A stretch of DNA of 42,856 nt from Hyphochytrium catenoides. Its lineage: Eukaryota > Protista > Hyphochytriomycota. Positions 3,189-35,000 of this stretch are shown here, piece after piece. The notes under the pieces are model-generated. The model did not search any database. It was not told the origin of the DNA and saw nothing but the letters and a program-made list of their open reading frames with translations. The stretch lies in contig FLMG01004224.1 in NCBI GenBank assembly GCA_900088475.1, positions 1 to 42,856 of the forward strand, read 5' to 3'. Each line of letters begins with the position of its first letter. Position 1 is the first letter of the stretch. A program made the translations under genes and the position numbers.

Positions 3189-4550
3189 ATGACGGGGATG
3201 GCGGTCCACGATGCTATCGCCATTAGCAAGGTAACAAGGCGAGCAACAGCCGCTGCCCTGGCGATTGATTGTCTCTGCTGGCCCCTTATTAAGCATCTCC
3301 AAGCCCAACCTGACGTCGATGATCCCTCAGCAGAGTGTCTTCTTAAGGCTAAACAGGCTATCGAGACAGTGCTTGATCGCCACCAAGCGCGAAAGGAGAT
3401 CCCAAAGAATGGAAATGAAGCTGCAGTTGGTGAGAAGCGAACCTTTCCGGTAGCCCCACTTCCAAGAGAAGATCTCTTCTGTTCTGCAGAAGGCAAACAA
3501 CCCATCGTCAGGGTATCGCCCTACCTCTCTCAACAGGTAGAGAGAAAGCGAGAAGATAAGGAGGAGATCCCTTTCCTTCCGTCTATAATGCGCACCACTC
3601 ATCCTGCGCAACGGAGAGTGGATAAGAAGGGGAAAGACGGCACATCAGTCAAAGAAGAAAGAGAAGTCCGATCGACCAAGAAAGCAATGATGCCTATACG
3701 TCCCTACACGGATCTCACTGATGAGGAGAGCAGACTGACGGTCATGGAGAGATTCTGGGGCAAGGGTGCCTACCTATGGTGCAAGCGGCTTGACACCAAG
3801 AGAGAGATCAGAGTGTCCATTTTCACTTTCTCTGTGGTGCTAAACACGCTGCTAGCCTCGCTTTATGTGTCGATGCCCTTGGGAACTATAGAGACAGGGG
3901 TCGTTATCTCTTGCATGATGCTCACAACTGCCCTCCAATTGTGCCTGTACGCGTATCTAGCCAACTTCTACCTCTTCGTAACGACTCTGTGGACCTTTGA
4001 AGCCTTGATGATCCTGATAGAGAGCTTACTCTTCACGGCGGCGCTGGCCGGCGTGTTCTGCTTCTCACTCTCTGGCTGGCTCTACGCCTTCACAGGATTC
4101 ATGCATATTGCCGCTACGTTCGGCTTCTATGATAGTTATCCTAGTGAGATAAGGAAAGATGGACGAGCAGGCTTCGCGATGCTCTGCCTCTTTGCTCTCT
4201 CTCTTATGATGGTTATTTACCTCCGTATCCCGCCGCATATGTGCCTCTACAGAGTGGACCTGGAGCAGGGACTGCAGGATGAGAACAATCCGGACTACGT
4301 TCCCTCTGTCTGGAGCCTGTCAGTGCTTGAGTTCTGCCTCAATAGAGGATTCAGTACGGGCATGCTACTGCTCAGACTGACGTACACAGTGCTAAAGTAT
4401 CCTCAAGACTGCGTGGTTATAAGGAGCAGAATTCGCATTCTAGAGGATGACAAGCGCTGCCAGACCTCATCACCAGCAAGTGATGGCGCCACTCTATTCT
4501 TAAAAGAGAGACAGTCGACGATGCCACCAGATAACCAGGCACTGAAATGA
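3189..4550 (+). CDS. Uncharacterised multi-pass (~6 TM) membrane protein, 453 aa, intronless; paralogue of 39108-40413
   Basis: Long uninterrupted ORF with a charged N-terminal half and hydrophobic segments in the C-terminal half. Shares motif blocks with the 39 kb ORF: TDLTDEESRLTVM/TELTTEESSMTVM, FYDSYP/FYDSFP, LYRVD/LYRLD, EFCLNRG/EFCLNQG, PQDCVVIRSR/PRDCVIIKSR. Confidence 0.85.
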   Translation: MTGMAVHDAIAISKVTRRATAAALAIDCLCWPLIKHLQAQPDVDDPSAECLLKAKQAIETVLDRHQARKEIPKNGNEAAVGEKRTFPVAPLPREDLFCSAEGKQPIVRVSPYLSQQVERKREDKEEIPFLPSIMRTTHPAQRRVDKKGKDGTSVKEEREVRSTKKAMMPIRPYTDLTDEESRLTVMERFWGKGAYLWCKRLDTKREIRVSIFTFSVVLNTLLASLYVSMPLGTIETGVVISCMMLTTALQLCLYAYLANFYLFVTTLWTFEALMILIESLLFTAALAGVFCFSLSGWLYAFTGFMHIAATFGFYDSYPSEIRKDGRAGFAMLCLFALSLMMVIYLRIPPHMCLYRVDLEQGLQDENNPDYVPSVWSLSVLEFCLNRGFSTGMLLLRLTYTVLKYPQDCVVIRSRIRILEDDKRCQTSSPASDGATLFLKERQSTMPPDNQALK

Positions 4551-4976: not shown

Positions 4977-5813
4977 CTATCCTCCAGATGTTATCTTCAT
5001 CACACGTGCCACAGCGAATCCATCCCAGCCTTTAGTCCCCACGGTCTGCAGAGCTGTGGCCACTATCAGTCCGTCACGCTCGTAGTTCCGGAGCAGCTCA
5101 AACGTCTCGCTCACGCCTCTGGTGCTGCCATCCTGTGCCGCAAGCTCCTCACTAAGGATGTGTCCTTCCCGAACCACGTTATCTAGGACATTGAGACTAC
5201 CGATGCGAGAGAGGTGCTCGACGGTGGCTCTCAGATAATGCTTGTTGTTTGCTTTGTCGGCGTCAATGAAGATGAAGTCAAAGGGCTCGGCGTCTTGGTT
5301 CTTTATCTCTTCGGCCAGCGCCTCTAGAGAGTCCAGACCCTCTCCCCTTCGGACTTCTACGACCTCGGAAAGACCGGCCGTGGCGATGTTTAGCTGAGCA
5401 ATATCTGCATACCGCTCCTCGCGCTCTATAGTGATTAGCTGAGGCTTCAAAGCAGTGCTGTCGGTCATTAGTGCCGGCGTGGCAGTCGAAGAAAAACTTG
5501 ATGGAGGTGGAGATGAAGAAGGAGAAGGAAGAGAGAGAAGTGCTCTTGCGATCCAAATGGAGCTATAACCGCCTAGAGTGCCAACTTCCAGAGGCCGTCT
5601 GGCGCCAATACTCAGCGCCAAGATGTGCAAGAGCTTTCCCTGCGTAGGTGAGACTTGATGCTCCGGCAGAGAATGCTCCTTCGACAGCTTTAACGCTTCG
5701 GATAGAGCATGATCAGGCGATGCTAGGAAAGACTCGATGTAGGAGTCCACTTGTCTCCAGCCCTCTTCTTCCTTGATAATAGTTGGAGTCTGCATGTTGC
5801 CCGTGTGCTGCAT
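4977..5813 (-). CDS. SAM-dependent O-methyltransferase (Methyltransf_3, caffeoyl-CoA/catechol OMT-like), intronless
   Basis: Motifs VSPTQGKLL, LEVGTLGGYS (SAM-binding motif I), FDFIFIDADK, DNVVR (metal/substrate site) and LQTVGTKGWDGF. The ORF track starts at GTG 5822; the first ATG is 5813 (alternative 5795). Confidence 0.93.
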   Translation of the reverse strand: MQHTGNMQTPTIIKEEEGWRQVDSYIESFLASPDHALSEALKLSKEHSLPEHQVSPTQGKLLHILALSIGARRPLEVGTLGGYSSIWIARALLSLPSPSSSPPPSSFSSTATPALMTDSTALKPQLITIEREERYADIAQLNIATAGLSEVVEVRRGEGLDSLEALAEEIKNQDAEPFDFIFIDADKANNKHYLRATVEHLSRIGSLNVLDNVVREGHILSEELAAQDGSTRGVSETFELLRNYERDGLIVATALQTVGTKGWDGFAVARVMKITSGG

Positions 5814-8369
5814 GAAAGGCACAATAGCTTGTGGCTGGTAGCACTGGCCTTACGACAAACAGAAGGCTAGAGCTGACTGCTGCTGGGACAGGAATCTTCA
5901 TCGTTCCCCTGCGGTTCTGCAGGGTTACAATGAAGGCAGGAGAAGCCGCCGAACAGTGTATGACAAGGAGTCTCCCGACGGAAGAGAGTTGATAACATCT
6001 TGGCCGTCATTCATTCTGTCGAAAGCCTGTTGTTCCTAACTTACTCTACGTAGCTGGCACCTGGGAGAAGAGTGATGCTCCAAAACAAAGTTCTGATGCT
6101 CGTGAGAGCAGAGCAGGTTCAAGGACAAGCACTCACGTCAGAAAAACACTCTGACGAGCCCTGTCAAGGGTGAGTAATAAGTCGTCAGCGGAAGGAGAAA
6201 GGGTGAGAAGCGTCTCTTCTCCTGTGTCGAGCAGTAGACGTCGAGGAATGACAAGAAGAGGATGACGAGGAATCGAGAAAATCGGTGAGGCTTCGTTTCG
6301 TCGCCTTTACTGGCTCTCAACAAAGCAGATGGAATTGAGAAGAACGCTAGAGAACTCGAGACGCTGCTGCTGGAACAAGAGCGCCTCAGACGAGGCAGAA
6401 GAGAGCAGAGAGGTAAAGAAGAAAGGCTCAGAAGAGAGAGGAGAGGGAGCGAGAAAGAGGACGGCAGGAGAAGAGAAGCAATGAATGGTAGAGAGCAACA
6501 GGACCTAAGGCCTTACGATCTCATCATCCTGTTAGTGTGCCACTAGGAAGAAGAGCTAAAGATCTTTGCTCCCTCTTCTGCCTGCTTGTCTCAGAGATTT
6601 TCTCTTATCTTTGGCTCTGCCTCCTCTCTTCTCATGTTTGGTTGTCTCTCCTACTCTTCGTGAGAAAAGGAACCTGGGAGAGAAGACTGGTGTTCAGAGG
6701 AGGATACAAGGCAGTGCCCAAGAAGGCTAGAAAGGCGTTGATAAAGGTTTGATGTCAAGCTTGCTATGAAGTTCAAGATGTCAGGCTCTGTGTGCAGGAA
6801 GGATGAAGTGATGGAAGCGCCACAAGCCAGCCACCAAGCAATAGAGAGCATCAAAGCATCATCGCGAGGAGATGGTCGTCACCATCGTCCCAGGGCTGCA
6901 TCTCTTCTTCTCTCACTTCAGTTGGCTTGCTTCAACAAACTCCATCAGCCTACAGACCCCACGGCGAAGCAAAAGCCTGCAAATAACATGCCTCTTACTC
7001 GCAGTTATTATCTTTCTCTCTTCGTCTGGTGGGCTTGTGAGCGCTGTAGGATCGAACTTCATAGAAGCGAAGGAATGTCGGATCAACAATAACTCCCTCG
7101 TCTCTCTTCAAGCTCTTTCCCACTCTCTAGCTTTCTATCATGATGTACTGGAAGAAGCAGAGGAGTAACCCTGGCAGGTGAGAAACCAACATAGTGGTTG
7201 AGTTGCTACCGTGGAGAAAGAAGAAAGTAAGCTGCTACCATTATCTGCTTCTTTGTCTCGTTCCTTGTGTTCTCCCAACATAGAGGATGTTGCTCGAGGA
7301 TGTTGCTGGCGTCGTAATGGAAAGAAATGGAGGAGGACGGGGCTTCCCACAGACAACAATGAAAGACAGCAGGAAGATCTTCTCTGCTCCTTGGTAGATA
7401 GCTTGATGAGAAGCGGACGAGGTTCTGAGCTCTTATCCAGGCAAGCTGGCCGTTCACGACGTGCGAAGCAGGACAGTTCACCAATCCCCCGCGCTAGCGA
7501 GGGATGAGGTCAACAAGGTGAGAAAGCAGTACGCAGCAACCGCGTAGACGCCCCTCAACAGCCAGCCGCTTCGCCTTTTAATTTTCTCAGCTTCAATGTG
7601 CTGCCATCTTTCTGCCTCTACGACGTCTTCATCATGTTTCTTTGCCCACAACCGTGCGGCAGCATGTTCAAGAAGGAATTATCAAGTAGCGGGCAGGGCA
7701 TCATAGGCTCTCTTCTTCCAAGAGACGGACGGACCCTCATAGTTGGGAGCAGAGCGTCGAGGGTCTTTGTGTCGGAAAGCATAACGATGTCACTATCGCG
7801 AGGTTGTTAATAAGTCTCCATGAGATAACAGATCACGATCTCCCTGATGATGTTTGCTCTTTTCCCTTTTATTGACTGTTGCTGCAGCTGTGACGCTCCA
7901 TTGTTCCTGCTAATGATAGATAGAGGGCGAGACAGGTCCAATGGCAGGCATCTCTCGTGTCGTCCTCTCTCTCACACAGCCACATCTCCTTCTTATCATT
8001 TGCTGTCGTACCTTGGGAAAGAACGTGTACAAGCAGAAAGGAGACGACGAGAGGCACAATGAGAGAAGACTGCACATCATTTGCATAGTCGGTCAACCAC
8101 CAGCACATGCCAGAAACCTTCTTCCTTTGGCAGGTGCACCTTCGCCACTTCAACTTCCATTCTCCATCAATCAACATTCTTCCCACCGTACTACTTGCCA
8201 CAGGACTAAGACAGGGCGTCACTTTCAAGCTTTATCAGGGCTCACAGCCCAAGAACAGTGACAGTGTGCATTGAGAGAAGCTGAGGACGGTTATGCAGGA
8301 AACAGGTGTCACCATTTTATTTCAGCAGAGAGACGCAAGGACAAAGGGCAGTCCTCCTAGCTGCTACTC

Positions 8370-8378
8370 ATCTCTTCT

Positions 8379-8431
<53 letters not shown>

Positions 8432-8515
8432 TCCTTCTCTTCTCTCTCTCTCTCTCTCGTCTCTCTCTCTCTCCTCTCTCTCTCTCCTCTCTCTCTCTTG
8501 CTCCCTCTCTCTCTC

Positions 8516-8549
<34 letters not shown>

Positions 8550-8565
8550 TGCTCCCTCTCTCTTC
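8370..8565. repeat. Long (TC)n microsatellite with interruptions
   Basis: Directly visible; includes repeated ctctcttgctccctctc variants. Confidence 0.95.
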
Positions 8566-10540
8566 TTGGTACCTTGTCTAGGATTTCCGCTTTGTTTCGA
8601 CGTCTGTTTTCTGGCTCATGTGCTTTGCTTTCCCTCCCGAAGTATTGGTCTATCTCTCTGGGCAGCTCCCTGTAAATCGTTTGCCTGTACTAGGTCCTCA
8701 TAGTCTCCGCCTTCTAACGCGGCTGACGGCCCAGACTGGTGTCCCTTCCTCCACTTTTCTCGCTTCTCTTAGTGTTCTGGAGAACCGCCTGCTGTGTCTA
8801 CTAATCCTTTCGCTCGTGTCTCGCGGTTAGTCAAAGTTTGGGTTTAACTTGAGAAGCACCAAGAGGACATACGACGAGGAAGAGACAGGGCCAGCCTGAA
8901 AAGTCTTCAGGGTCTCGCACTTGTAGCTATTTTGCTGACGAGACCTCCTTGAAGTCACAGCAGCTTTGCCTCTACCACTCTCTTCTTATATAACCCTGCT
9001 ACCAGTATCTCCCAGTCATAAGGTTGACAGAATCCCTGCAAAAGAAGAAGAAGATGGATGGCGAAGAGGGGCCATTTGATGCACAAAGAACGCTACGGCT
9101 TTTAATTACTTCTTGATTGATGCACTTCTTTCGACAACCTTCTACTTAGCCTTACTCTTTATCACCTTGTTTGCCATTTTCATGCTAATACTAGAGGCCA
9201 AATTTTTTGCTGTCCATCTCCTGCTTCTAGAGATAGAAATAGAGAGGAAACTCAAGCTTGGTGGAGTCTCTTCGTCTTTGACGGGTACCGCTACCTTCCC
9301 TGGATGACGTTGCGCCCCACTATCTATCCCTGGATCTCTTTTCTTCCTCACGTGCTGCATCTCTCTCTCTCTTTCGCACTTAAAAAATATCTGCTATGGT
9401 GCTGCCGTGTTTGCCCGCTTTGAACTTCAAGCAGCCCAGACCATGTGCCACAGCCGATATCTCACGGGAGCAGAGTAGAGGTGACGGACTTCAAGCTCAC
9501 CAGAGAGCTCAAAGAACTGTGAAGACGACCACCAACATGCGGAAAGCAGAGCCATGAGGCAGGCTAAGAAGCAACCTGGTCAAGACAAGAGCATCTAAGT
9601 CTAACACTGGTTTTGCCAAGAGAAGAGCCATTTGAGAGGGGAGGAATCTGACCTTATTGGGCCCCATCAGCTTCAAGTTTCACCTATGATTGCTGCAGAT
9701 GCCCCTCAGCCGTAGACTCCTCCATGCTCCACGCCTCTTTGCCTTCCAGCAGGTCTTACGGCTGGTGGGCTATTGTCCCTGGGCCGAGGAGAGGAAACAG
9801 TCTTGTCCCTAGTCGCTATTTATGCATGGATAGTTTTTGTTCTGTGCCGAGGAGAAGAGACAGTCTTCTCCTCTAGTAATAGAGCCACTGTCAGCAGAGA
9901 TTTGGTCTCTGATACCTGGATCTTTTTTTCCATGCAAGGAACTTTTTTGGGCATCATGAAGAGCCAAGGAGGAGAAAGAGAAGAGAAGATGCACAAAGCA
10001 AAGCAGCAGCAGAGGAGACGAAAGACCTGACGTGCCATGAGATAATACTATTTCTTGTCTCCCTTGAATAACTCTAAGTCTAATGCTTCATCTCTGCCAC
10101 ATCTCCTGTTCCTCTTCTTCTCTCGCTCACACGGCACACGACCAACCCTTAACTCTTGTTCACCCCGCCCTCTCTCCTTCTTACATGACCGTCTTCAGGT
10201 CGGACTTGCCGTTCCTTCTGAGCTTCACAGCTACCGTCCGTCCATCTCCTTACATCCTTGCTCTAACTCCTCCTGTACTACTAACAAAGGCCTTGCTGCC
10301 TTGCCTCCTGCGGCGGGGACTCGACTTGCTCATTTTCCTCCCTTTCTTACACTTTCCTTGTCCTTCCTCCTTGCTAACGTCAGGGCGCGCGCCGCTCTGT
10401 CTTGGGCCGTGTCATCAGCAGCAGGAAGGAGAAGACAGTGCGGTCATCCAGGGATCAGAGAGATCTTTTGTCCATCAAGTTGACGAATGTTATCTATGGG
10501 ATTCCAGGACCGTCACTCCTGTCTCCTTCTGAGCCCTATA

Positions 10541-10670: not shown

Positions 10671-12082
10671 TCTCACTCGTTTAGACCTGGGCTTATGCAG
10701 AAAACAGGGTACATACTATAGAGCTTTTAGATTTGTGGTAATGCAAAATGAAGCGGGCACTAATATAATATATAGAGCTTTTAGAACTTGTTTGCCCTCC
10801 TTTCTGTCTAGCTTTAGAAGTTGGTGTTGGCTCTTGTTTTTTGTCGTTTACCAAGTGGTAGCAAGGTAGCAGGTCCACTAAAGGCTCCTCTGTCCCACCT
10901 AAATTATTTGGGCTTATTTCTAGTCGGTTGGTTGGGGAAACTCTTTGCCCTCTTTTCTATACAGATTTAGGTTTAATTTCTAGATGCAGTAGAAGCCGGT
11001 GGACCACCATTGTAACCTTTCCTCAACTTCACTATCATTACGACAGGGCCACCTGAACAAAGGGTAGGAAGACAAGATTTAGGCTGACCTCATCTCTCCA
11101 CATCTCGCACTGCTCCTTCTGCTCTCTCTAACCTCCTCTGTCTCTAAATATAAGCTTTTATAATCTAACCCCCACATATCTAGCTTCATCTCTGTCTCCT
11201 GTAGAGGCTGTTCTCGCACTCGTCCTAGCCGCTTCACATTTGTCCCGTCATTTTGCGGTACAAGCTCCTTCCATGCCTGTCTTTTGGCTGTTGAGGTTGA
11301 AGCTTTTTGCCTATCTCTCCATCCCGACAGCAGCCATCCTTCTTTGAGTTAGATCATGGCCGTCTTCAGGCGGGCACGGCACTCTGTCTCGATCTGTCTT
11401 CCCCTTTGTCTGTCTTTTATTGCCTGGTGGCTGGCTGGTGGTGCTTTCTTTCCCATCACTTCATCCGTCACACAGACAGGCGCCTGACATCCTTGAACTG
11501 CCAAAGCTCAGTCATCGCCTTTCTTACCCGTGTGTCTTGCCTCCTCAGAGTCCTTTGGCTCATCACGAAGAAGAGTAGGAGAGGACTAGTATCAGGCCTG
11601 AAGAGAGAGGAGGAAGAGCCAGAAAAGAGCAAAAGTTTGACAACACGCAGAGGAGGAGGACAAAGATCTTTCCTCGGCGCTTCTTGCTAGTGGTGCAATC
11701 GTAGGATGGTGGGGCCGTAGGTTTCCTGTTCTCTGCCATTCGTTGCGTCTCCTCTCTTTCTTTCTTTGCTCTTTCCTCTCTCTCGCCCAGTCTTTCCTCC
11801 TTCTCCTCTGCTATGATCTCCTGCCTCAATCTCCTCCCTAGGCTGCAACTCGCACGTTCTCTAGCATTCTTCTCATTCTCTTTTTCTTTGAAAAAGACAC
11901 GAAGATACTCTCGATTCCTCATTGTCATCCTGCTGTCATTCCACAACTTCCACCGCACGGCACATCAACAGCCTCGGAACTAGGAGCTGGACTCTTTTCC
12001 TGGCCTACAATACAGGCACTACCTAAAAGGACAAGAAGGGGCAACCCTCGCCTTCAAAGCTTTGTCTCTGTCGTTCAACACG

Positions 12083-14044
12083 ATGATCACGGCCATCAAG
12101 AGCGTTTTCTTAGGGCTTGCGCTCGCCGCGATCCCAACGTTTTCCTCTCTGTCCCCGCATTCATCATCTGCCAGAGGCTTCGTGGAGGCCACTGCACCAG
12201 GCAACAAGGACACCATTGCCGTGCTTTTTGCCTGGGACTACGATGCAATCGCAAGAGAGTGTAACAGCACGTTGGGGCCCCTGGGCTACGGCTTTGTCCA
12301 GGTTTCCCCTGTACAGGAGCATATCCAGGGATCGGAGTGGTGGTAAGTCCTATTCATGTACCTATCCTCTTCTCTCTCTTCTCTCCCTTCCACTCTCTCT
12401 CTCTCTGTGTCCCTCTCTCTACCGCTCTGTGCCTCACCCTCTTCGGAGTTCGCGGCTTCCAATGAGAGCAGTATATCGTAGCAAAGCCCCTTCTGATGTG
12501 ATTTCTGCCTTCTTTGCAGGACTATGTACCAGCCTGTGAGCTATAAGATCGCTAGTCGTTTCGGAGACCGGGACTCCTTTTCCAAGATGGTCCAGTCTTG
12601 CAAGCGGTCAGGCGTAGAAGTCATTGTGGACGGTGTCATCAACCACATGTCCACCGGCAGAGGCAACATCGGTACCGGCGGCTCTTCCTACTCGAAGTAC
12701 AACTACCCGGGCAACTACCAGGACTGGGACTTCCACAGCTGCCGTCAGAAGATCCAAGGCGACGACTATAAGAAGGACAAGTGGCGTGTCCAGGAGTGCG
12801 AGCTTGAGACCCTCGCAGATCTCAAGACGGAGACCGACTATGTCCGAGGCAAGTTGGCTGGTTTCATGAACGATCTGCTCGACCTGGGAGTGGCTGGCTT
12901 CCGTGTGGATGCCAGCAAGCATATGCCTTCTGGAGATCTGGTGGCAATCAAGGCAAAGCTCAAGAACCCTAACATTTACTGGATTCAAGAGACAATCTAT
13001 GGCAAGGATGAGGTTGTTCAGCCCCAGGAATACTTGGCAACCGGCGAAGTCCAGGAGTTTCGTTATGCCACGAGCATGAAGGCCGTCTTCCAGAAGAACG
13101 ATAACCAGAAGCTGGCGTACTTGAGAAACTTCGGCGAGGGCTGGGCCTTCCTCAGCAGTGAGCAGGTCAACGTTTTCGTCACCAACCACGATACTGAGAG
13201 AAATGGGTGGACTTTGAACTACAGAGACAATGGCAGATACACCATTGCGCATGTCTTCATGCTGGCCTGGCCATACGGAACACCGTCAGTCCATTCAGGG
13301 TATGAGTTTCCCGATAGTGACCACGCTCAAGGACCACCTTTCGAAGGAGCAGTGAGGAAGTGCTATGAGGACGGCTGGAAATGCCAGCACTACTGGCGTC
13401 AGATCGGCAACATGGTGAAATTGCGCAACGCTGCTCGGGGCCAGCCAGTCACGAACTGGTGGGACAATGGAAACCACGCCATCGCCTTTGGCAGAGGAAA
13501 TAAGGCCTTCGTCGTCATTAATAATGAGGATTTCCCTATCAACCGCCAGTTCAGCACCGGCTTGCCTGCTGGAACCTACTGCGACGTTCAGCACGGAGAT
13601 ATCACTCCTGATGGAAAGTGTACTGGCCCAACTATCACTGTCAACAGCAACGGACAATTCTCTGCTAATGTCGGACCTCAGGACGCCGTGGCTATCTACC
13701 TCGCTGTTGGAGGCGGCGGCGATCCTACAACGAAGCCAACAGTCGAAGAGGGAGCTTCTTTCACTGTGAAGGCTGAGACGCAGCTTGGTCAGAACATCTA
13801 TGTCGTTGGAAACATCCCCGAGCTGGGCAGCTGGAACCCTGCTAACGCTCTTCTCATGTGCTCTGCCACCTACCCAGACTGGACGCGGGAGGTAGCGCTC
13901 AAAGCTGGCACTCAGTTTGAGTATAAGTACATCAGGAAGGAGGCGGACGGAAAGACTGTCACATGGGAGTCTGGCTCCAACAGAGTGGCTGCTGTGCCCA
14001 CGGACGGAGGCCGCGTGAATCTCAAGGACACCTGGCGCGCATAA
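12083..14044 (+). CDS. Secreted alpha-amylase, GH13 (Streptomyces/actinobacterial type, GH13_32-like), with C-terminal CBM20 starch-binding domain; 2 exons, ~594 aa
   Basis: join(12083..12342,12520..14044). The intron 12343-12519 (gtaagt...ttgcag) restores [18 protein letters not shown]. Has a signal peptide, DGVINHM, catalytic [10 protein letters not shown] (Asp), WIQE (Glu) and FVTNHD (Asp), an Aamy_C beta domain, and CBM20 ([18 protein letters not shown]...FEYKYIRK...WESGSNR). Confidence 0.97.
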
Positions 14045-17000: not shown

Positions 17001-17103
17001 CTTCTTGTCTTTCAGTAGCATTCCACCTGTCCTGAGGACCTGACCAGGAAGAAAGAAGGTGATACTGCCTTCCCGAAGAGCGTGGCAGATCTTTGCAAGC
17101 AGA

Positions 17104-17775
17104 ATGAATGGACTAAGAAGCAAGCTTAAGCAATCCTCCTGGGTTCTATTCCTTTGGCTGGGTTTGATGCCCGTATTGCTGACACCCCAACACGCGATGG
17201 CCGCGGGTGGGAGAGTAGCCAACAGAGAGCGCTTTCAGGACAAGGACTTCACCTTCGATTTCTTCAACGCCCCAAGAGCTGACGATAACCCTGGGGGAGG
17301 GAATATCATTCAGGCATCTTCTATCCAATTACCTGCCCTTGAAGGCCTAGGAATATCCTATAACATGGTCACGGTAGAGCCTTGCGGCGTCTCTCTTCCT
17401 CACGTACACCCACGGTCCACAGAGTTCTCCGTCATGGTAAAAGGCTCCAGCTTGCGCTTCGGGTTCGCTGAGGAGAACCCTAGTCGCCGCACTGTTATTT
17501 TTACGTTGAGACCTGGACAGGCGGCGTTTGTTCCCCAAGGGCTCATACACTTTGCTCAAAATCTTGGATGTGAAGAGGCAGTATTCTTTGCAGCGCAAAG
17601 CAGTGATGATCCCGGCACCGTCACAATCGCCTCCCACCTCTTTGACTTTCCGGATGATACCATTGGCGTCAGTCTCACTCTTGCGGACCCGGAGGTTAGC
17701 AGACTCAGGGGAACCCTGCCGGACAACCCTGCCAAAGGAAGAGACGAATGTAGGGCCAAATGCGGTCTCAAGTAG
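17104..17775 (+). CDS. Secreted germin-like / spherulin-1-like cupin (Mn-binding monocupin), intronless
   Basis: Germin box 1 PCGVSLPHVHPRSTE and box 2 FVPQGLIHFAQN supply the His/His/Glu/His metal ligands. N-terminal hydrophobic signal from ATG 17104. C-terminal ECRAKCG resembles spherulin-1-type proteins. Confidence 0.92.
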   Translation: MNGLRSKLKQSSWVLFLWLGLMPVLLTPQHAMAAGGRVANRERFQDKDFTFDFFNAPRADDNPGGGNIIQASSIQLPALEGLGISYNMVTVEPCGVSLPHVHPRSTEFSVMVKGSSLRFGFAEENPSRRTVIFTLRPGQAAFVPQGLIHFAQNLGCEEAVFFAAQSSDDPGTVTIASHLFDFPDDTIGVSLTLADPEVSRLRGTLPDNPAKGRDECRAKCGLK

Positions 17776-18724: not shown

Positions 18725-19882
18725 TCAGCAGTCCTGCTTTTTATGATGAACCAAGAAGTCAGCAATCTCAATGGTGAAAGCTGGTGGAACGTCAAGTATG
18801 TGTCCGCCTCCACCCACGCTATACAGCATGACATCAATGCCTTCCGGACACTCAAGGAAGGTCACTGGCGTCGTTGCATTGCCCTTTCCTGGCTCGAAGA
18901 TAATTGGAGACTTGTAGACTGGAGTATCAGCGTCGTGGCAACGGTTGAGAGTCGCCCAACTCTTGACAGTATCTACGGCACCAGCGTAAGTTCCTCGATA
19001 ACTTTCTCCTCCTGTATACGATACGACGTCATCAGCTGTACCATGCACATAGAGAACGCTCAGAGGGCTGGTCGCGTTACACAGGCCACGATCAGCGTAC
19101 GTTCCTCCGGCGAACCCCACGATAGCAGCAATGCGATCAGAGTAGGTACAGGCCATAGCATGCGCCATAAAGCTCCCATTGGAAAGACCGATGATGTACA
19201 CTCTCTTCCTGTCAATGTTGAGTCTCGCTGAAATCTCTTCGATAAGGCCCATCAAGTATCCCAGGTCATCAACATTGGTGCCATTGATGTCGCAGCACAA
19301 GTGTGGCGCGTTCCAGAAGAGCTTGCCAGTGCCTTCCTCTGCAGTTCCAGAAGGAGCAACATAGACAAATCCTTCCGACTCTGCTGCAGGACCAAAGAAG
19401 TTGAGCCCGTTCTCAGGCACATCGGAGTATCCATGGAGAATGAGGAGTAGAGGGGATGGGCTAGAAGCGTTGTAGTAAGCTGCCGGGATGTACACTTCCG
19501 CCGGACGCTCTCCTCCAACGATAATAGTGCCTTTAGAAGGTAGTTCTTCGTCGTCCATGCTCTTTCCCTCTAATATCGGTGGTAGAGTTTCCTCTGCCTG
19601 GCAGATCCCAACCCCTCCTGGTTGTTGGATGTTCGTGAGACCATAGTTGGAATCAGAGAAGGCCATGAGCGCAATGATGAAGAGCCGATATAGCACAAAA
19701 ACTCTACGACGTCTGCTGGCTGCACCAGCCGTGCTGACACCACCATCACTAACAATAAGGATAGATGTCGAACTCATGCTCCTAGCACAACGGCTTGTAC
19801 CACGACGTTGCCCTTTGAAATTTTTGAAGCAGATGATAGAAGTGAGGGGAAAAGCTATCTGAGGCCTTTTCGTAGACGGCAT
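18725..19882 (-). CDS. Alpha/beta-hydrolase of the LpqC / PHB-depolymerase / CE1-like esterase family, intronless
   Basis: PLLLILHGY oxyanion region, nucleophile elbow GLSNG, HGTADDVV (Asp), GGGH (His) and WNxxxxCC...VDDLGYL. A hydrophobic signal/anchor VFVLYRLFIIALMAF follows RRRR. The true start may be a downstream Met. Confidence 0.9.
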   Translation of the reverse strand: MPSTKRPQIAFPLTSIICFKNFKGQRRGTSRCARSMSSTSILIVSDGGVSTAGAASRRRRVFVLYRLFIIALMAFSDSNYGLTNIQQPGGVGICQAEETLPPILEGKSMDDEELPSKGTIIVGGERPAEVYIPAAYYNASSPSPLLLILHGYSDVPENGLNFFGPAAESEGFVYVAPSGTAEEGTGKLFWNAPHLCCDINGTNVDDLGYLMGLIEEISARLNIDRKRVYIIGLSNGSFMAHAMACTYSDRIAAIVGFAGGTYADRGLCNATSPLSVLYVHGTADDVVSYTGGESYRGTYAGAVDTVKSWATLNRCHDADTPVYKSPIIFEPGKGNATTPVTFLECPEGIDVMLYSVGGGGHILDVPPAFTIEIADFLVHHKKQDC

Positions 19883-23564: not shown

Positions 23565-23634
23565 CCTTTTCTCTCTCTCTCTCTCTCTCTCNNNNNNNNN
23601 NNNNNNNNNNNNNNNNNNNNNNNNNNNNNNNNNN

Positions 23635-23670
<36 letters not shown>

Positions 23671-23780
23671 TCGCTTCTCTCTCTCTCTCTCTGGCTCTCT
23701 CTCTCTTTTCTCTCTTGCTCTCTCTGTGTCTCTTATCTCTCTCGTTCTCTTTTTCTCTCCTCCTTTTCTCCCTTTCTCTC
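23565..23780. repeat. (TC)n microsatellite containing an assembly gap (N 23592-23634)
   Basis: Directly visible. Confidence 0.95.
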
Positions 23781-23799
23781 CATCCTCAGTACATTCAAA

Positions 23800-24045
23800 G
23801 AAGAACTCGAGGAAGATACACCTTTACCTGCATACAACCTTTCGCTTCGCATTCCTATGAGCAATCCCTTCATCTTTCTCAAGTAAAGAGCCTTCCTCCT
23901 CCTCCTCAATAAGAAGAAAGGTTGGTTTGGGATTGCAGACCATCATTCTCTCGTCTCCCTCGTCGGTTTCCCCCTCAAGTTGGCTGCTCTTCTCATCTTC
24001 GCGCTCTTCTATGTGCGCCTGTCTTGACGAACTGAATGGTGACCG

Positions 24046-24083
<38 letters not shown>

Positions 24084-24407
24084 CCTCTTTCTCAGCCTCT
24101 CTCTCTCTCTGGTAAATCGTAGAACTAAGGACTGGTTACCTGTATACAACCTCGCTTGGCCTTCTTCACTCCTCCCGCATTCCTATTCTCCCTGTTCTCT
24201 CAATCTCTTCTCTATCGTTTTCCTTGGTGAATATAACAGCCTTCTCCTCGTGACCAAGTAGAAACGTTGGTTTGGGGATTGCACGACCATCATTCATCCT
24301 TCTCTTCTCCCCTCTTTACCTCCTTCTTCTTTACTCAGGTTGGCCGCTAGTCATCTTCGTCAGTCCCTCCACTGGTGTGCGGTCCTGTCTTGGCTGAACG
24401 GTGAGCG
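23800..24407. repeat. Diverged ~250-290 bp tandem duplication separated by a (TC)n tract
   Basis: Collinear shared blocks in ~23800-24045 and ~24120-24407: ttacctg(c/t)atacaacct, cgcattcctat, gttggtttggg(g)attgca(c)gaccatcattc, ctca(a/g)gttggc, tcatcttcg, cctgtcttg, ctgaa(t/c)ggtga. Confidence 0.8.
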
Positions 24408-24822: not shown

Positions 24823-26759
24823 ATGATGATGGTGACAAGAAGATCCGAGAGGGAGCAAGGGGGCTACCAGGAAGACCCCGCACCACTCTTTCAATCATCA
24901 ACAAACAGCGGAGAGCAAGAGTCTCTCGGCACCGATGAACAACAGAGCTCTCAGGCATCAGGTTCGGGCACTGTAAAGGTAATGAAGCGGGTATGGGGTC
25001 CTGCTCTTACCCCGGATGGGCACTGGGAGGTTGTTCCATTGTTTTTTCCTTTTTCGTCTTCTTCTTCTCTCTATCTCTGCCCCGTTCACCGTTTCTCTTC
25101 CCTGACCGTTGCTATCCAGCTCTCTACTATTACACCTCCGTGATCTGTCTCTGTTAAGTGTATCATCAAGTAGCGAGACTTAACACTGTTCCGTCCCTAG
25201 GGAAAACAAGCACCGTCGGGCTTGAGACACCTACCATCTGGTTCCGACTTCCTCACTATATCTCAACTGCTGCGTTACCTTCTCCGCATCAAGTTCTTTC
25301 GGTCTGCCGAGGAAGCTCTGGCTGCCGAGCAGGCAGCGCAAGCAACTGAGCAGCAGGGAGATGAAGAGGTAAGAAGGCTTCGGGTGAGAAGTAACCTAAT
25401 ATCTTACATTCTTCCCTCTCGCCGGGCCCTTTTTTCGCTACCTCTCTGTCTCCTCCTCCCAACGTGGCCATGAAAGTTTTTAGTTCCTCCTCTTATTAAC
25501 TTCGACCGTCGCCCACTACGTCTGTATCTCACTTCTCTTTGCGTCATTCATGTTCTCCGCCGCTCTTCGTACCACCGCAGACTACAGCTTTGAACCAAAC
25601 GACACTACACGCGTTGTCACTTCTTCCGAAACCCACACTGGACACGCTATCTCGCATCCATGCCGGCCATGCCTTAAACATCCCCTTTGAGAACTTGAGC
25701 CTTGCGCATCCCCGATATATCAATAGTAATACCGTGGATGGCCCCGTACGAGCTCCACGCATTGACCTACAGTCACTGTATGACAAGCTGGTCAGACAAC
25801 GGCGCGGTGGCTGGTGTTTTGAAATGAATCCGTTGTTCACGGCTGCCCTCCGCACCTTAGGCTTCTACTGCTACATGGGAACGGCGAGAGTAGTTATACT
25901 GAAGCCAGACCCAGAGGAAAAGGGCTTAGCTCCAGCTAATGGGGAGAACGGCGATAATCTGGCGCAAAGAAGGAGAGAGAAGCTTGACACCCCATCTTTC
26001 CCCACATCAGAGAATCCTGGAGATCTTTTGGAACTCACTTCTAGTACTCATCAGATCGTCTTTGTCCGGCTGCAAGAGGACAATGTTGAGGGCCCGACTT
26101 CAAAAGAACACGAGAAACAAGCCCCATTGCCCACCACAGAGAGTAGGCTCACAAAGGGTCAACTATATCTTTGTGATGTTGGCTTTGGCCGTCATGGCGC
26201 TCTGGTCAGACCTCTTCCTCTCAGGGCTTTCGATGAGGTCTTCTCTTCCTCCTCCTCCGTCCTACCACCAAACTCTCCTTCTTCTGCATGCTGGAGGCTA
26301 AGGAGAGGGCTGATTGGTAGTGCTGATGGTCTAACTGCCACAGACGTCAACGCTCATCCTGAGCGAGAGTCTCATGTCGGATGGTACTTCCAGTCACTGC
26401 TCTACAAGAAGAGCAAAGGGAGCTATGAATGGTGCGACCAGTACTACTTCACCACGCAGACAACCACAGTGGCCGACTCTGTGATGGCCAATTTCTACAC
26501 AGCGGCCCAGCATCCTCTTTTTACCGAGCACGTGGTCCTTACTATGCCTACAGATGATGTGGGAGGCCGCATCTCTCTGTTGGACTACACGCTCAAGACC
26601 CATCAAGGCTATTCTGGAGCCAGAAAAACGGCTTCTTCCTCTGCACAAGCGGAAGCGGACGACGCACCTCCTACAGTGGTTGAAAAGCTCTTGAAGTCTG
26701 AGGCGGACAGAGATAAGGTCTTGGAGAAATACTTTGGCCTTGGGCCCTTGGATACTTGA
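24823..26759 (+). CDS. Arylamine N-acetyltransferase family protein; 3 exons, ~500 aa
   Basis: Model join(24823..24978,25201..25368,25581..26759); both introns are phase-0 GT-AG. NAT motifs LLRYLLRI (exon 2), HALNIPFENL, RRGGWCFEMN (catalytic Cys), THQIVFV (His) and YLCDVGFG (Asp). Exon 1 is the least certain part. Confidence 0.92.
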
Positions 26760-27826
26760 TCCACCACCCGCACTCCTGCGAAGCCATGTTAAAGGATGAG
26801 GCGGTGAGCACCATTAGGGGACCCGAGGAGGTACCAATCAAGAAGGATGAGATATTCTAGTCTATTATCACCACGCCCACTCATCGAGCTAGTTAGACGA
26901 CAACGGAAGAGACTCTAATAAAAGGATTAGCCACATGAACAGCTGTCGACCTCCTTCAACTCTGGCATGGACGTTGTAAGTCGATTGCTCCTGCTAATGC
27001 TGTCTTTCTCGCCGCCACTACCATCACCCTCAGCAGCCTTTGCACCTCATAGCTTCAACTATTTATTGCCATGCGGGCCCAACGATAGCTCTCCTCTTCC
27101 TCCAGGCACACTTGTTGTCGGAAAAACAAGAACTCTCCGACAGCAACAACACGCAGCCGTCTGCTAGCTTCATTCATCGTTTATCCTGCTTTTATCATCA
27201 TAAAAAGGGCCTTACGCCTTGCAGCGAGGGAGATGCAGCCGCCAAACCTGCTGCTGCTTGCGTGTTAGCTCTATTATTGTTGGCGGCCTCTGCCAAAGAA
27301 GGCGGCAGCAGCCTGTCCTTGTGTTCTTTCTATGAGTCTATTTTTTATGAGCTTTATTACGCTTTTAGCTGTATTTATAAGAAGTAAGAGAAGACTGACC
27401 AATGAGAGATACCAAGGTTTTTGAAATCTGAATATATTCCTCCCTGTGAATATCTCTAAGAAGTCAGAGAAGCTGCTGGAAAGGTGGATGAGCCGAAAGG
27501 TCGCTAGTTTTTATAGTCATCATCATCTAGCAAATACGCCTAATAAATAATAAAGCTCGAGTGGGTGAAGGCCAGCCAGGCGGCGGCTTGAGCGTCCGTG
27601 CGATGATCTTCATGCTCCGAACTCGGTGCCCTGCTGATGGCATTTGTCCTCCTTGGAAAGAGACGTCTTGCCTCTTCGTTTCCGTCGTCCTGCCTTTCTC
27701 TCTCGCATCGCCACTAGCTATCTGTTCGCATCCACACGAGACTGATTCAATATAGGGCGACGGAGCGTTAGCTGGGTCAGAGATCTTTGGTTGGTTGGTG
27801 ACTTTGATCCCGACGTATCGACGAGG

Positions 27827-28849
27827 ATGTGGAACGTTATCAGATGGCAGAGAGCCTTCTTCAGGCTGTGCTGTCTAGCGGCGGCAAGCCTCATCCTTGC
27901 TGGAAGCACAGGTGTCTTCGCAGCAACTACTCATCACTCGCGTTTGTCAAAAGTGCCAGCCAAGTTCCATCAAGCTTCGTCCCTAGAGGAGGTCCTTCTG
28001 CAGGGGAGCAGGAGGGGCCGCCGTGGGAAACTAGAGCGACAGAAGGGCACGCTGAACCTCGAGACATATGGCACTGAGGCAAACTGCGCAGGGGACAGCT
28101 CTAAATGTGCGGCTGATGAGACCTGCGTGACCTTTCGTGAGGCCACAAACGGAGGCGATGACAGCATTAGCGTGTTCCGTTGTGTACAGACAGTAAAGAC
28201 CAACAATCTATGCCTTCGGACGAACAGGCAGAGCAATTTTGGGTATTGTCCTGAAGGCCGACTATGCAAGAATCATCTTGACCAAGAGATGCAGTGCAAC
28301 CCCGGTCCTGATTGCTTATATGGCTACAACCCCATCAAGCTGGTGGATAGATGTAACACTACGTTCAATGCGTGCTTTGCTAGAGGATGCGGGGCTGGAG
28401 GCTCTGGATGTCCGTCTGGCTACACCTGCCGTGCCTCTGCTGCCGGACAAGTGTGTGCCAGCCAGACCCTTCCTGTGCTCTGTCCCGTGGTCCCGACTAC
28501 TGCTAAGCCAGAGGTAGCGACAGAAGCTCCTACCACCACTTCACCGCCTATTGTACCAACGAGTAGTGCGCCTTCAACGGTGCCGGTAACAGCAGCAGCT
28601 CCTACTACCTCTACAGCTGTCACCACGACAGCTCCACCTCATTCCACTGGCCCCCCTTCTCCTACTGCTACGACTGGACACCCGACAACACCATCGACAC
28701 CTGCTGAGGATAAGGACAAGAACACAAAGACTACAAAAAATAACGCAGTTGGGACATCCGCAGGTCGCTCCTGGCTTCAGAGCCCCAGTCAACTAAACGT
28801 AGTCATGACAATGCTGCTGGCCACAGTTCTTGGCCTTGCCTGGATGTAA
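27827..28849 (+). CDS. Cys-rich secreted/surface protein with Thr/Pro mucin-like stalk and probable GPI-anchor signal, intronless
   Basis: ATG 27827 gives a signal peptide (...LCCLAAASLILAGSTGVFA), then a basic RRGRRGK site, a Cys-rich domain, a T/P/S-rich linker and small residues (NNAVG) before a hydrophobic C-terminal tail (VVMTMLLATVLGLAWM). Confidence 0.85.
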   Translation: MWNVIRWQRAFFRLCCLAAASLILAGSTGVFAATTHHSRLSKVPAKFHQASSLEEVLLQGSRRGRRGKLERQKGTLNLETYGTEANCAGDSSKCAADETCVTFREATNGGDDSISVFRCVQTVKTNNLCLRTNRQSNFGYCPEGRLCKNHLDQEMQCNPGPDCLYGYNPIKLVDRCNTTFNACFARGCGAGGSGCPSGYTCRASAAGQVCASQTLPVLCPVVPTTAKPEVATEAPTTTSPPIVPTSSAPSTVPVTAAAPTTSTAVTTTAPPHSTGPPSPTATTGHPTTPSTPAEDKDKNTKTTKNNAVGTSAGRSWLQSPSQLNVVMTMLLATVLGLAWM

Positions 28850-30594: not shown

Positions 30595-31383
30595 ATGGAT
30601 ATCAAGAGCCTCTGGACGCTCACAGCTGACCTGTGGCCATATTCTGAGGCTTCGTTCGTCCTTGTCGGCGGCTGGCTGGTCTATCTCGTAGGTTGGTGGC
30701 TCCCCAATGCCTTTATGGCGGCCGTGTATCACTTTGATCTCTTCCCGGAGTATAAGATCCAAGGAGGCAAGTGGCCAGATAGGAAGATGGTTCGCGCGGC
30801 ACTGATAGAGAATATTGTGGCGCACAATCTCTTGCATCCAGTGCTCTGGTATGGAGTGTATAAGGCTCTTTATGAGGGCAGAGTCTTTGCGCCTCTCCCA
30901 TCTCTATATACTTTCCTTTCGCACATCCTCTTCGCCTGGATCTGGGCGGATGGAAGCTTCTACTGGCTCCATCGCCTGAGCCATCATCGCCTGATCTACC
31001 GGCACATCCATAAAAAACACCACGAGTTCAAGCAGACCATTGGAATAGCATCCACATACGCTCATCCTCTAGAAGAGATCTTCGTCAACGGTGTATCAAC
31101 AGTGGCCTGGATCTTTCTACTGCCTTCTCCGCCTCATATCCTTACATTTTGGTGCTTCCTCCTGATGCGGTATCAGGAGACAGTCGAGGAGCATTGCGGA
31201 TATAACATCCCTTTCTCTCCCTGGGCCCTCTTGAGGGACAACAGTCACCACGACTTTCATCACTCGCACAATGTTGGCGCTTACGGAACGTTCCCTTTCT
31301 GGGACTGGCTCTGTGGGACGGACAAGGCATACAATGACTGGAAGGTGAAGACTGGAAAGGTTGCCAGCGGCAAGCTTAACTAA
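30595..31383 (+). CDS. Fatty acid hydroxylase/sterol desaturase superfamily enzyme, C-4 methylsterol oxidase (ERG25/SMO)-like, intronless
   Basis: Di-iron His boxes YWLHRLSHH, IHKKHHEF and HHDFHH, plus YKIQ, YAHPLE, EEHCGY and WDWLCGTD, with hydrophobic segments. Confidence 0.92.
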   Translation: MDIKSLWTLTADLWPYSEASFVLVGGWLVYLVGWWLPNAFMAAVYHFDLFPEYKIQGGKWPDRKMVRAALIENIVAHNLLHPVLWYGVYKALYEGRVFAPLPSLYTFLSHILFAWIWADGSFYWLHRLSHHRLIYRHIHKKHHEFKQTIGIASTYAHPLEEIFVNGVSTVAWIFLLPSPPHILTFWCFLLMRYQETVEEHCGYNIPFSPWALLRDNSHHDFHHSHNVGAYGTFPFWDWLCGTDKAYNDWKVKTGKVASGKLN

Positions 31384-32090: not shown

Positions 32091-35000
32091 TCATGGTCGA
32101 CCTCTCTCTCCCACCATCGTTGGCAGTGTCTGAAGGCCAGCAGCAGGTATCGGACAGCGCTTTTCTAGTGGCGAACTTGTAACTCTATCCCCCTTTCCCT
32201 CGGCGGCCCCAAAGACAAACACTTTCCTTTCACTATCCTCCTGGCTTGGCGCCCTTGGCATCAGCAGCAGGTGATACCGAGCTCTGTTATGTCTCCGACG
32301 GGAGCTACGGGTGATTTTCCGTCTTCTCTCTTTCATCAGACAGGAGGGCTCATCCTGACTCTTCACTTCGGTCAGAACAGCTTTCGTAGGCCCTGGGCTC
32401 CTTGCCATCTTCTTCGCGATCCCGTAGACCATTAGACTGATCCCGAGGCTTAGTGAAATGAGCACTGCGAGAGTCACTCCAGCTTTGACTGTGACGATGA
32501 TGCGATCAAACTGCACAATATCCGTCTGGAGGAATGGAGCCACATAAAAGAGTTGTGAGGCATCCGGAAAACGGTGTAAAGGCTGGTATTTCTTACCCTA
32601 ATCCTCCTGGTCTCCTTCAATGCCTCTTCGAGCGCTTCACGATATAGCTGCTCTTGCTCCAAGAGCCTCTCATTCTGAGACAGCATGTGACTCTCCTATG
32701 GACGGGCCAGATACAAGGATTATGTTACAAAGGGCCATCGTTCAATAAGAACGACACAAAGAAGTGACTGATAGGACTGGTTAACTAGACGGAAGAAGTG
32801 GAGATGCCATACCAAACGCTCCAGACGACTGAGAGCCGCCATTTGCTCCTTTTGCATCTCCAGTAAAATGGCTGTGTACCGGACATTGATATCCTCGAGG
32901 TAGCGGTCAATCACCGACTGATTAAACTCCAAAGACTTGACTGTGAAGAGATAAAACAGAACATGAATCGAAATGCACAAGTAAAAGTGTGGAACAGTTG
33001 GTAGACCCAAGTGGATGACAGAAGATGAGGCAAACTTCTAGACCAAGGAGGGCACTACCTTCACAGCCAAGACAAGTTGTGAGGACAACGGACGAGTGCG
33101 AATAGTGAAAGAAACCTCGTCGAACGACGGGAAAGACACAAACTGAACCGCCGTATTACGACATGCGGCGTTAATAGGCAAGGGGAAAGCAAGAGTCTTA
33201 GAACATTACTCACTCTTCTTGGTCAGAATTCTAAAGATGCTCTCGTAGCCGCCCGAAGTCTTGACTTGGAGAGCTTTCAGGTGCCGCCCGGTCTCGGCCG
33301 ACGTACTTTGGTGTGGCGGCGTCGGCCCTCCTTTCTTCTTCCCTCCCTCTCCCTCGCCCCCTTCTAGGGCTGGGTCTTGAGAATGGGAACCTGAGGTATC
33401 TATTGCGTTGTGATCGTGTGCCGTGTCATCTGCGTGCCCTTTCTGCTTGGCCTGCGCCAGTCTGTCCATCATGTCAGACGCTAGGCGTGATATCATGGTT
33501 CTCAAATCCGTCCCGGAGGTATTCTTCTGCTCCGGAGAATCAGGAGAAGCCGCCTTCTCTTGTTCTAGTGTGGTGGAGTTCGTCATGTTACACTCTACGG
33601 AGTGCTGATGCAGCACTTTATTCGCCTGGCGAGGTTCCCCGCGTGGCGTCAGAGGAGAAGGTCCAGTAATCGCTGCCTCTCGAGACAAAGGTGCTCCAGT
33701 GGTCGAAGATGCTCCAGTGGTCGAAGGTGCTCCAGGAGTTGCGCAAGTAAAATAGCTGAATTGATATATACTTTGCTTTGGCCGACAAGAGCTAAGAGAC
33801 TGAGAGCCACGAATTGGAGCTGAAGCTGCTGCACTCTTGGTTGTGGCTGTGACGGTATGGTTGACGTTAATAGCTACTTGGCCGCCCTTGCTTAACTCGT
33901 TCTCAGGTTCCTTGTCACTCTCGCTAGTGGGGGCTGTCTCTTCAGCTTGTGGAACGGTATGATTCTTGGTAACCGAACCGTCGGAAGGAGATGCCACAGG
34001 ACGGATAAACTCTGAGGCAGAAGTCGCAGTGCCACGCTCTGTCTCGTGCGCAGTTGCAGAAGATAAGGCAGTGTTCGCTTCCACTCCTATATTCTCGCTG
34101 TCTTCTTGTACCGAAGTACCAAGAGATGAGTGACTTGCCTCTTGATGATGCGGAGACGGTGAAAACTCCACTTTTTCGACAGAGGTTCCTCCGTCTTGTT
34201 TGTTGCCTTCTTTCTCCTCCAGATTGACCGCGGGAAAGGACTTCTCTTTCTTCTCGTCGGGCTCCTTGGCGGTCGTTCCTGTCTTATTTACAGGTGCAAC
34301 GAGATCTGTTCCTGGAGGGGTAAAATTGACCTTCTGACTTTCACTCTGGTCACTCAAACCACTACTCGAGCCGTCTTTGGACTTCCATCCAGAGTCTTCT
34401 ACCAAATACTGCGCAGATTCCTTCTCCAAGTCCGAGACCGCTCGTTGTGAATCCTCTCCAAACTCTAACTCCAGGACTTCAGCCATCGTGGACCCGAACA
34501 CACTGTCCAAAATAGGGTAGATGAAATGCTTTAGAGAGACAACTCAAGAAATAAGATGACAGCAAAAAGAGCCACTTAGATGAACCTCTTCTAATGCCAC
34601 CACCTGGCAGCTTACATAACGATTGGAGAGAGAGGACAAAGTGATAGCCGTGACAAGAGGAGTAGGCCAAGAAGGTATGGAATCTTTACCTGATTTGGCT
34701 GACGGTGCAGTAGAACTCGCCTCCATAATGAGTAATAAAGCGGAACTTCAAGAATCGCACTTGATGGTGTCTACCATTCACCTTAAATTCCTGCTGACCA
34801 GACGCACGTTTGGCGTGGAAGGTACCAAGAAGTACCCATTTGTCGGTAGGAAACTGCCGACTGCCCAACACCTGAGAACAGGGGTACGACATCGGGTGAA
34901 CATGGCAGCGGCAAAAACCAAAATGTTAATAGACATCGCTATCAAGGCTATTCGATGCTGACAAAGATCATGCAAAGCCAATGAACTCCTCATAGGACTA

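Follow-up and report, generated by a model that had tools for sequence, protein, structure and literature searches.

A probable actinobacterial amylase with a starch-binding module and one predicted intron in the genome of the hyphochytrid Hyphochytrium catenoides

The Hyphochytrium catenoides contig FLMG01004224.1 (assembly GCA_900088475.1), analyzed here over its whole length of 42,856 nucleotides (nt) and called the window below, carries a two-exon amylase gene at 12083–14044, delimited by reading the sequence; the gene and all its parts lie on the + strand. It is very probable that this gene descends from an actinomycete amylase with a GH13_32 catalytic core, a domain C and a CBM20 starch-binding module, that it resides in the nuclear genome of the host, where it gained one intron and is maintained by selection, and that its capture was independent of the capture of related enzymes by basidiomycetes. 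Direct support exists for the gene structure, the domains, the bacterial affinity, the separation from the fungal clade, the presence in host DNA and the selective constraint. Subfamily labels such as GH13_32 are taken from PMC8467227.

Exon 1 (12083–12342) starts with the ATG at 12083 and holds 86 codons plus the TG of a split Trp codon. Exon 2 (12520–14044) contributes the G that finishes this codon and continues for 507 codons to a TAA at 14042–14044. Between them lies a phase 2 GT-AG intron of 177 nt (12343–12519), beginning with GTAAGT and ending with TTGCAG. If it were left unspliced, the frame would stop immediately, at the TAA in 12344–12346. The predicted intron is 71% pyrimidine, with a CT-rich tract at 12357–12423, and a branch-point-like CTGAT motif at 12493–12497 has its A 23 nt upstream of the 3' splice site. 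When the two exons were searched separately as protein queries, residues 36–86 of exon 1 matched residues 42–92 of a Micromonospora protein (P0003) with 69% identity (BLASTP), and exon 2 matched the same protein with 61% identity over 511 columns, in an alignment starting at P0003 residue 94. Only the split codon separates the two matches on P0003 (residues 92 and 94), with no residues gained or lost, and excision of the intron restores both the reading frame and the colinearity with the bacterial protein. The remainder of exon 2 is colinear with P0003 except for indels of five residues or fewer, so a single intron is predicted. The resulting coding sequence of 1,785 bases contains no stops and no frameshifts. 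Canonical boundaries, a pyrimidine-rich 3' part, a branch-point-like motif and frame-restoring excision are the features of a U2-type intron, and from the DNA sequence and this colinearity we infer that the intron is spliced. The sequence-only reading had described a 177-nt GT-AG intron with a CT tract splitting a conserved Trp codon, and exactly such an element is present in the DNA, where an independent contig also spans it (X1, see below).

The encoded protein has the layout of an actinobacterial secreted amylase from end to end, as that reading had also proposed: all of the motifs it quoted were found, and the layout is borne out by Pfam domains and by the colinearity with P0003. The N-terminal 35 residues (12083–12187), judged by eye to be a signal peptide followed by a variable Ser-rich pro/linker segment, have no similarity to the bacterial N-terminus; the BLASTP alignment begins at residue 36. 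This segment has a single Lys followed by an uncharged hydrophobic run of 12 residues (residues 7–18) and then a Ser-rich stretch, and by eye appears to resemble a eukaryotic signal peptide. The product is most likely secreted. Exon 1 contributes the first barrel strands, aligning with the N-terminal part of the bacterial enzymes, and the exon 2 part of the GH13 (beta/alpha)8 barrel with domain B (12542–13402) matches Alpha-amylase PF00128 (E = 1.5e-19, 71 bits, cut-off 22). The all-beta domain C (13460–13699) matches Alpha-amylase_C PF02806 (E = 5.2e-17, 62 bits, cut-off 21.2). It is followed by a Gly/Pro/Thr-rich linker (13700–13756), placed by reading exon 2 and by the alignment with P0003, and by the CBM20 starch-binding module (13757–14008), which matches CBM_20 PF00686 over exon 2 residues 413–496 (E = 1.4e-28, 98.9 bits, cut-off 23.3). 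This region additionally hits the CBM20 found in structures of cyclodextrin glucanotransferase.

Among solved structures, the nearest are 8cqf, an alpha-amylase of 450 residues, and the Pseudoalteromonas haloplanktis enzyme (1aqh), then mammalian and insect amylases; E values for 1aqh and the animal enzymes (GH13_24, GH13_15) are about 1e-97 to 1e-83. The window protein agrees with these enzymes in the conserved sequence regions and in the catalytic residues. Aligned to 1aqh, the motifs GFRVD, QE and NHD of conserved regions II, III and IV stand opposite D174, E200 and D264, which places the catalytic Asp at 12908–12910, Glu at 12989–12991 and Asp at 13190–13192, with putative roles as nucleophile, proton donor and transition-state stabilizer, respectively. 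The two groups of enzymes differ in chloride binding and in modules. Amylases of the 1aqh and animal type bind chloride through Arg, Asn and Lys or Arg, and lack CBM20; the window protein keeps the Arg and Asn, has a Ser at the third ligand (K300 in 1aqh) and has a CBM20. This third ligand is missing in most actinomycete and all fungal GH13_32 enzymes (PMC8467227), and because of the Ser at this position, together with the common loss of the ligand in GH13_32, we predict that the enzyme is chloride-independent. The GH13_32 assignment itself comes from the grouping with actinobacterial amylases, with 1aqh, itself a GH13_32 enzyme, and the animal amylases as the best solved relatives. By its domains and residues, the protein is predicted to be a raw-starch endo-amylase that would bind starch granules through its CBM20.

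A word search returned 4,296 matches, and our conclusions are drawn from the best 120 of these. All 120 are Actinomycetota or unnamed metagenome proteins (51–61% identity, mostly at full coverage), including Micromonosporaceae, Streptomyces, Actinoalloteichus and others, and no eukaryote is among them. An exhaustive search of representatives clustered at 50% identity found one close cluster, which is actinobacterial (59%, E = 1e-178), with all other clusters at 47% or less. Thirty cluster representatives were named. They include bacterial outgroups (Bifidobacterium, Microbacterium, Jonesia, Actinomyces and Marinactinospora) and more distant eukaryotes, namely Mycena/Roridomyces, Tulasnella, Meredithblackwellia, the amoebozoan Planoprotostelium and Rhodelphis. 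With the Roridomyces protein as query, more than 100 Agaricomycotina proteins of the GH13_32 plus CBM20 type were retrieved. The window amylase is 56–61% identical to the core Actinomycetota vs. 40–47% to the basidiomycete GH13_32 proteins. No stramenopile relatives appeared among the named matches (the best 120 of 4,296, part of the representatives and a metagenome scan). That scan, for eukaryotic orthologues, returned only intron-less, high-GC bacterial loci with 59% identity or less.

Phylogenies gave the same picture. In a FastTree phylogeny of 174 rows, the window gene groups with 51 core actinobacterial rows (support 100). IQ-TREE trees under LG+G4 were built from 46–47 rows; the main run (47 rows, 498 columns) places the window gene with 15 core actinobacterial rows (98/99), and 14 fungal rows plus Planoprotostelium form a separate clade (97/96). 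A quick LG+C20+F+G4 tree of 26 rows recovers the same grouping, with a Shimodaira–Hasegawa-like approximate likelihood ratio (SH-aLRT) support of 95. In the best maximum likelihood (ML) tree the window gene, on a long branch of 0.45–0.6 substitutions per site, nests beside an Actinoalloteichus/Streptomyces subgroup (84/95). The approximately unbiased (AU) test rejected trees in which the window gene joined the fungal/amoebozoan clade (difference in log-likelihood, delta lnL, 88; p = 0.0004), and grouping the window gene with Rhodelphis gave p = 0.024. When only five fungal rows were used, joining the window gene to them gave p = 0.12. Placing the window gene as sister to the core clade instead of nested within it was compatible with the data (p = 0.49 and p = 0.31). 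The sequence-only reading had argued for horizontal transfer from Actinobacteria and had set against this a placement within a widespread eukaryotic GH13 clade. A eukaryotic clade of this kind does exist, in basidiomycetes, and joining it is rejected by the AU test; the actinobacterial origin is upheld by the best 120 of 4,296 matches, by the sole close cluster and by the LG+G4 and LG+C20 trees. Its description of the enzyme as Streptomyces-type holds for the actinobacterial GH13 plus CBM20 type, while the Streptomyces label is too narrow, as Micromonosporaceae are at least as close to the window gene.

Compared with the GH13_32 plus CBM20 amylases of actinomycetes (Micromonospora, Actinoplanes, Salinispora, Streptomyces), the window protein has the same architecture end to end, including the terminal DTWR, with 56–61% identity over 506 residues. 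The catalytic Asp/Glu/Asp are kept in both, and the third chloride ligand is missing in the window protein, as it is in most of the actinomycete enzymes (PMC8467227). Unlike the actinomycete genes, the window gene encodes a putative signal peptide of eukaryotic style, has a predicted intron in a Trp codon and a lower GC content at third codon positions (GC3, 0.67 vs. 0.76–0.98), sits on a diploid eukaryotic chromosome and has a long branch. The CBM20 alone is 52–65% identical to actinobacterial CBM20s vs. 34–55% to those of basidiomycetes. Since the CBM20 and the catalytic core share their nearest relatives, and the protein is colinear with its bacterial counterpart from end to end, the data indicate that the two were probably transferred together.

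The closest precedent is fungal. An actinobacterial amylase gene entered an ancestor of Agaricomycotina and gained 8–22 introns (Da Lage et al., 2013, BMC Evol Biol 13:40, PMC3584928), and repeated independent transfers of such amylases have been argued (PMC3584928). The type of event is the same, an actinobacterial GH13_32 gene entering an osmotrophic eukaryote and gaining introns, and many of the Agaricomycotina enzymes have a CBM20. The differences are that the fungal genes form a separate clade, that they carry 8–22 introns where the window gene has one, placed elsewhere, and that the recipient here is not a fungus. The authors had no evidence that the CBM20 of the fungal amylases arrived with the core (PMC3584928); the window CBM20, in contrast, is colinear with and closest to the bacterial module. 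In Roridomyces roridus, the gene for P0137 (L001 501–3864) has 15 exon segments and 14 introns. A shared intron site with this gene was considered and rejected: the intron that splits its codon 72 comes six codons before the homologous position of the window intron. As a side observation, the basidiomycete GH13_32 clade also contains P0164 (1293 aa) of the fungus-eating amoeba Planoprotostelium fungivorum, at 90/88 with Meredithblackwellia/Stereum/Mycena. A fungus-to-amoeba transfer is possible in this case; the branch is long and the placement unsure.

Presence of the gene in host DNA could be followed in contigs from three DNA runs of one study, which cover the locus. One of them, X1 (record 6; 12184–13221), runs from exon 1 through the intron into exon 2. 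At many sites a second base occurs at about half depth in two runs (e.g. 14/36 and 217/438), the pattern of two haplotypes of a diploid. One such difference stands just outside the coding region: an AAA insertion at 12055, in the 5' untranslated region 28 nt before the start codon, present in one haplotype at about half depth in two runs. In the mature region, the allelic differences comprise 11 synonymous and three non-synonymous changes (pS = 0.030), and the ratio of non-synonymous to synonymous polymorphism (pN/pS) is 0.076, which departs from neutrality (binomial p = 1e-5) and points to ongoing purifying constraint. The signal/linker segment has one synonymous and four non-synonymous differences. 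H. catenoides is diploid, with a single-nucleotide polymorphism (SNP) frequency of ~0.0275, a mean intron size of 208 bp and 3.64 introns per gene (PMC5795050); the ploidy, SNP level and intron size at the locus are consistent with this published genome.

The composition of the gene is also host-like, with a GC content of 0.55. The sequence-only reading had suggested comparing GC3 with the genome; the gene's value of 0.67 stands against 0.76–0.98 in 11 bacterial relatives from metagenomes and 0.46–0.63 in neighboring open reading frames (ORFs). An intron-less neighbor at 30595–31383 (+), similar to fatty-acid hydroxylases and methylsterol oxidases, has only eukaryotic or metatranscriptome relatives. 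These are mostly metatranscriptome contigs of ~1 kb plus a few protists, and the best is only 58% identical. The spanning contigs, the haplotypes, the host-like GC, the eukaryotic neighbor and the low pN/pS make both contamination and recent pseudogenization unlikely. The same reading's claim that the gene is no contaminant is thus well supported by the intron in independent contigs, the two haplotypes, the host-like GC and the eukaryotic neighbors.

Two alternatives would deny that this is a functional gene of the host. According to one, the 177-nt intron-like insertion broke the gene, and its product is an 87-residue peptide or an N-terminally truncated protein. The immediate stop in the unspliced frame fits such a pseudogene, as does the insert itself, largely CT-rich low-complexity DNA of a kind common in the non-coding regions of the window, and splicing is read from DNA only. 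However, the boundaries are canonical (GTAAGT, a pyrimidine-rich 3' end, CAG), a CTGAT motif precedes the 3' site by 23 nt, and excision yields a residue-for-residue alignment with the bacterial protein. With 1,785 coding bases free of stops and frameshifts, and a mature-region pN/pS of 0.076, we consider a pseudogene unlikely. According to the other, the gene is bacterial sequence or part of an assembly chimera. The best matches are indeed all bacterial (best 120 of 4,296), and the published assembly retains nine uncleared small scaffolds, some with bacterial-like amylase or amylosucrase genes (PMC5795050). Yet the amylase gene lies mid-window in 42.9 kb, with a neighbor gene that has eukaryotic relatives only; its GC of 0.55 and GC3 of 0.67 stand against a GC3 of 0.76–0.98 in bacterial relatives; a bacterium could not remove the intron; and separate runs yield contigs that extend across both exon-intron junctions, with two haplotypes at similar depth. 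Contamination is, to our minds, hardly credible, the least probable of all the explanations weighed here.

Two others accept the gene and change its route. Transfers from fungi to pseudofungi are well documented, and the gene might belong to the basidiomycete GH13_32 lineage and have reached the protist from a fungus. The GH13_32 plus CBM20 layout is common to basidiomycete enzymes, a joint clade was not rejected when only five fungal rows were used (AU p = 0.12), and a Roridomyces intron precedes the site of the window intron by only six codons. Once 14 fungal rows and Planoprotostelium were included, however, the joint clade was rejected (delta lnL 88, AU p = 0.0004). Identity to fungi is 40–47% vs. 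56–61% to Actinomycetota, and the intron sites differ, a neighbor within six codons being expected about one time in three by the density of 14 introns in 581 codons; a fungal route is very improbable. Equally small, in our estimate, is the chance that the direction was reversed, from a eukaryote to Actinomycetota, or that eukaryotes have passed the gene down vertically since ancient times. Eukaryote-to-bacterium transfer has reportedly been proposed for animal-like amylases in older literature by Da Lage and Janecek, and a position of the window gene as sister to the whole core clade was not rejected. Against this, a single eukaryotic row compares with actinobacterial rows in their thousands, each outgroup in succession (Jonesia, Microbacterium, Bifidobacterium, Actinomyces, Marinactinospora) again belongs to the Actinomycetota, the window gene is nested inside the clade in the best ML tree (84/95) and no stramenopile relatives were found among the named matches.

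Several points also weigh against our preferred reading, a transfer from an actinomycete to the hyphochytrid followed by intron gain. The intron is a model drawn from DNA runs. A weakly similar eukaryotic relative may have been missed, given that the best 120 of 4,296 matches were used and some of the representatives named. Positions nested in and beside the actinobacterial clade are both compatible with the data (AU p = 0.49 and 0.31), so the donor family is not fixed. The SNP counts behind the selection estimate are small and derived from contigs.

Under this reading of transfer from an actinomycete, the following history can be proposed. A complete bacterial gene, with its whole architecture, would have been transferred in one piece. 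Its bacterial export signal would have been swapped for a eukaryotic signal peptide, its base composition would have ameliorated toward host values, and one spliceosomal intron of host-type, CT-rich DNA would have been inserted into the conserved Trp codon, with purifying selection then keeping the gene. The secreted enzyme would dock on starch granules through its CBM20, and its Asp/Glu/Asp machinery would cut internal alpha-1,4 bonds and free malto-oligosaccharides for uptake by the osmotroph. H. catenoides is cultured on starch medium and its respiration is higher on dextrin and cyclodextrins (PMC5795050).

Earlier publications already cover the enzyme family, its architecture and the type of event, namely transfer of an actinobacterial GH13_32 gene to a eukaryote followed by intron gain. 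What is new is that the recipient is a fungus-like stramenopile and not a fungus, that its gene was acquired separately from those of the fungi and that there is evidence for the arrival of the CBM20 with the core. Within the library searched, no paper was found that connects Hyphochytrium with amylase; Leonard 2018 and a 2026 paper on osmotrophy do not discuss the amylase gene, and Misner et al., 2014 only counted secreted GH13 proteins. The gene adds a well-supported bacterium-to-protist transfer to the evidence that the feeding toolkit of the osmotrophic 'pseudofungi' was built partly by gene capture, and the parallel with the transfer to Basidiomycetes amounts to a convergent acquisition of the same enzyme. 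Because the bacterial ancestor would have had no introns, the single intron represents a dated gain, and the gene could serve studies of how fast and by what mechanism introns are gained, and of how foreign genes come by eukaryotic signal peptides. A broader scenario, to which we give somewhat less than an even chance, is that mushroom-forming fungi and the hyphochytrid each captured the same actinomycete raw-starch amylase, and that the hyphochytrid copy expanded into copies with varying intron numbers. If this dual capture with family expansion is true, it would offer a second, younger natural experiment on how quickly bacterial genes acquire introns and signal peptides, and a concrete example of a convergent lifestyle that rests on convergent gene capture.

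The CT-rich character of the intron is shared with other parts of the window. Low-complexity CT-rich tracts ~80–85% identical to the intron tract occur on the + strand at 8360–8575, 23631–23792, 2552–2699, 24039–24113 and 11739–11812, and a CT-rich run also encodes the c-region of the signal peptide (about 12138–12160). An origin of the intron from an introner or transposon was considered and set aside, as its similarity within the window is limited to such tracts. A search for an intron-hosted non-coding RNA gave no Rfam matches at E ≤ 1.

Elsewhere in the window, five ORFs of 257–453 aa, at 3189–4550 (+), 27791–28849 (+), 33206–34510 (-), 35577–36350 (-) and 39108–40127 (-), have no Pfam matches at E ≤ 0.001. 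Four further ORFs, at 4977–5822 (-), 17059–17775 (+), 18725–19882 (-) and 25539–26759 (+), encode enzyme domains often found in bacteria: O-methyltransferase family 3, cupin_1, alpha/beta hydrolase and arylamine N-acetyltransferase. In the wider genome, nine small H. catenoides scaffolds kept the label 'possible contamination' (Leonard et al., 2018, Table S9, PMC5795050), and three of the nine encode alpha-glucan enzymes that resemble bacterial ones, namely two amylosucrases and a Psychromonas-like alpha-amylase (PMC5795050). Such scaffolds may be true transfers rather than contaminants, and merit a second look.

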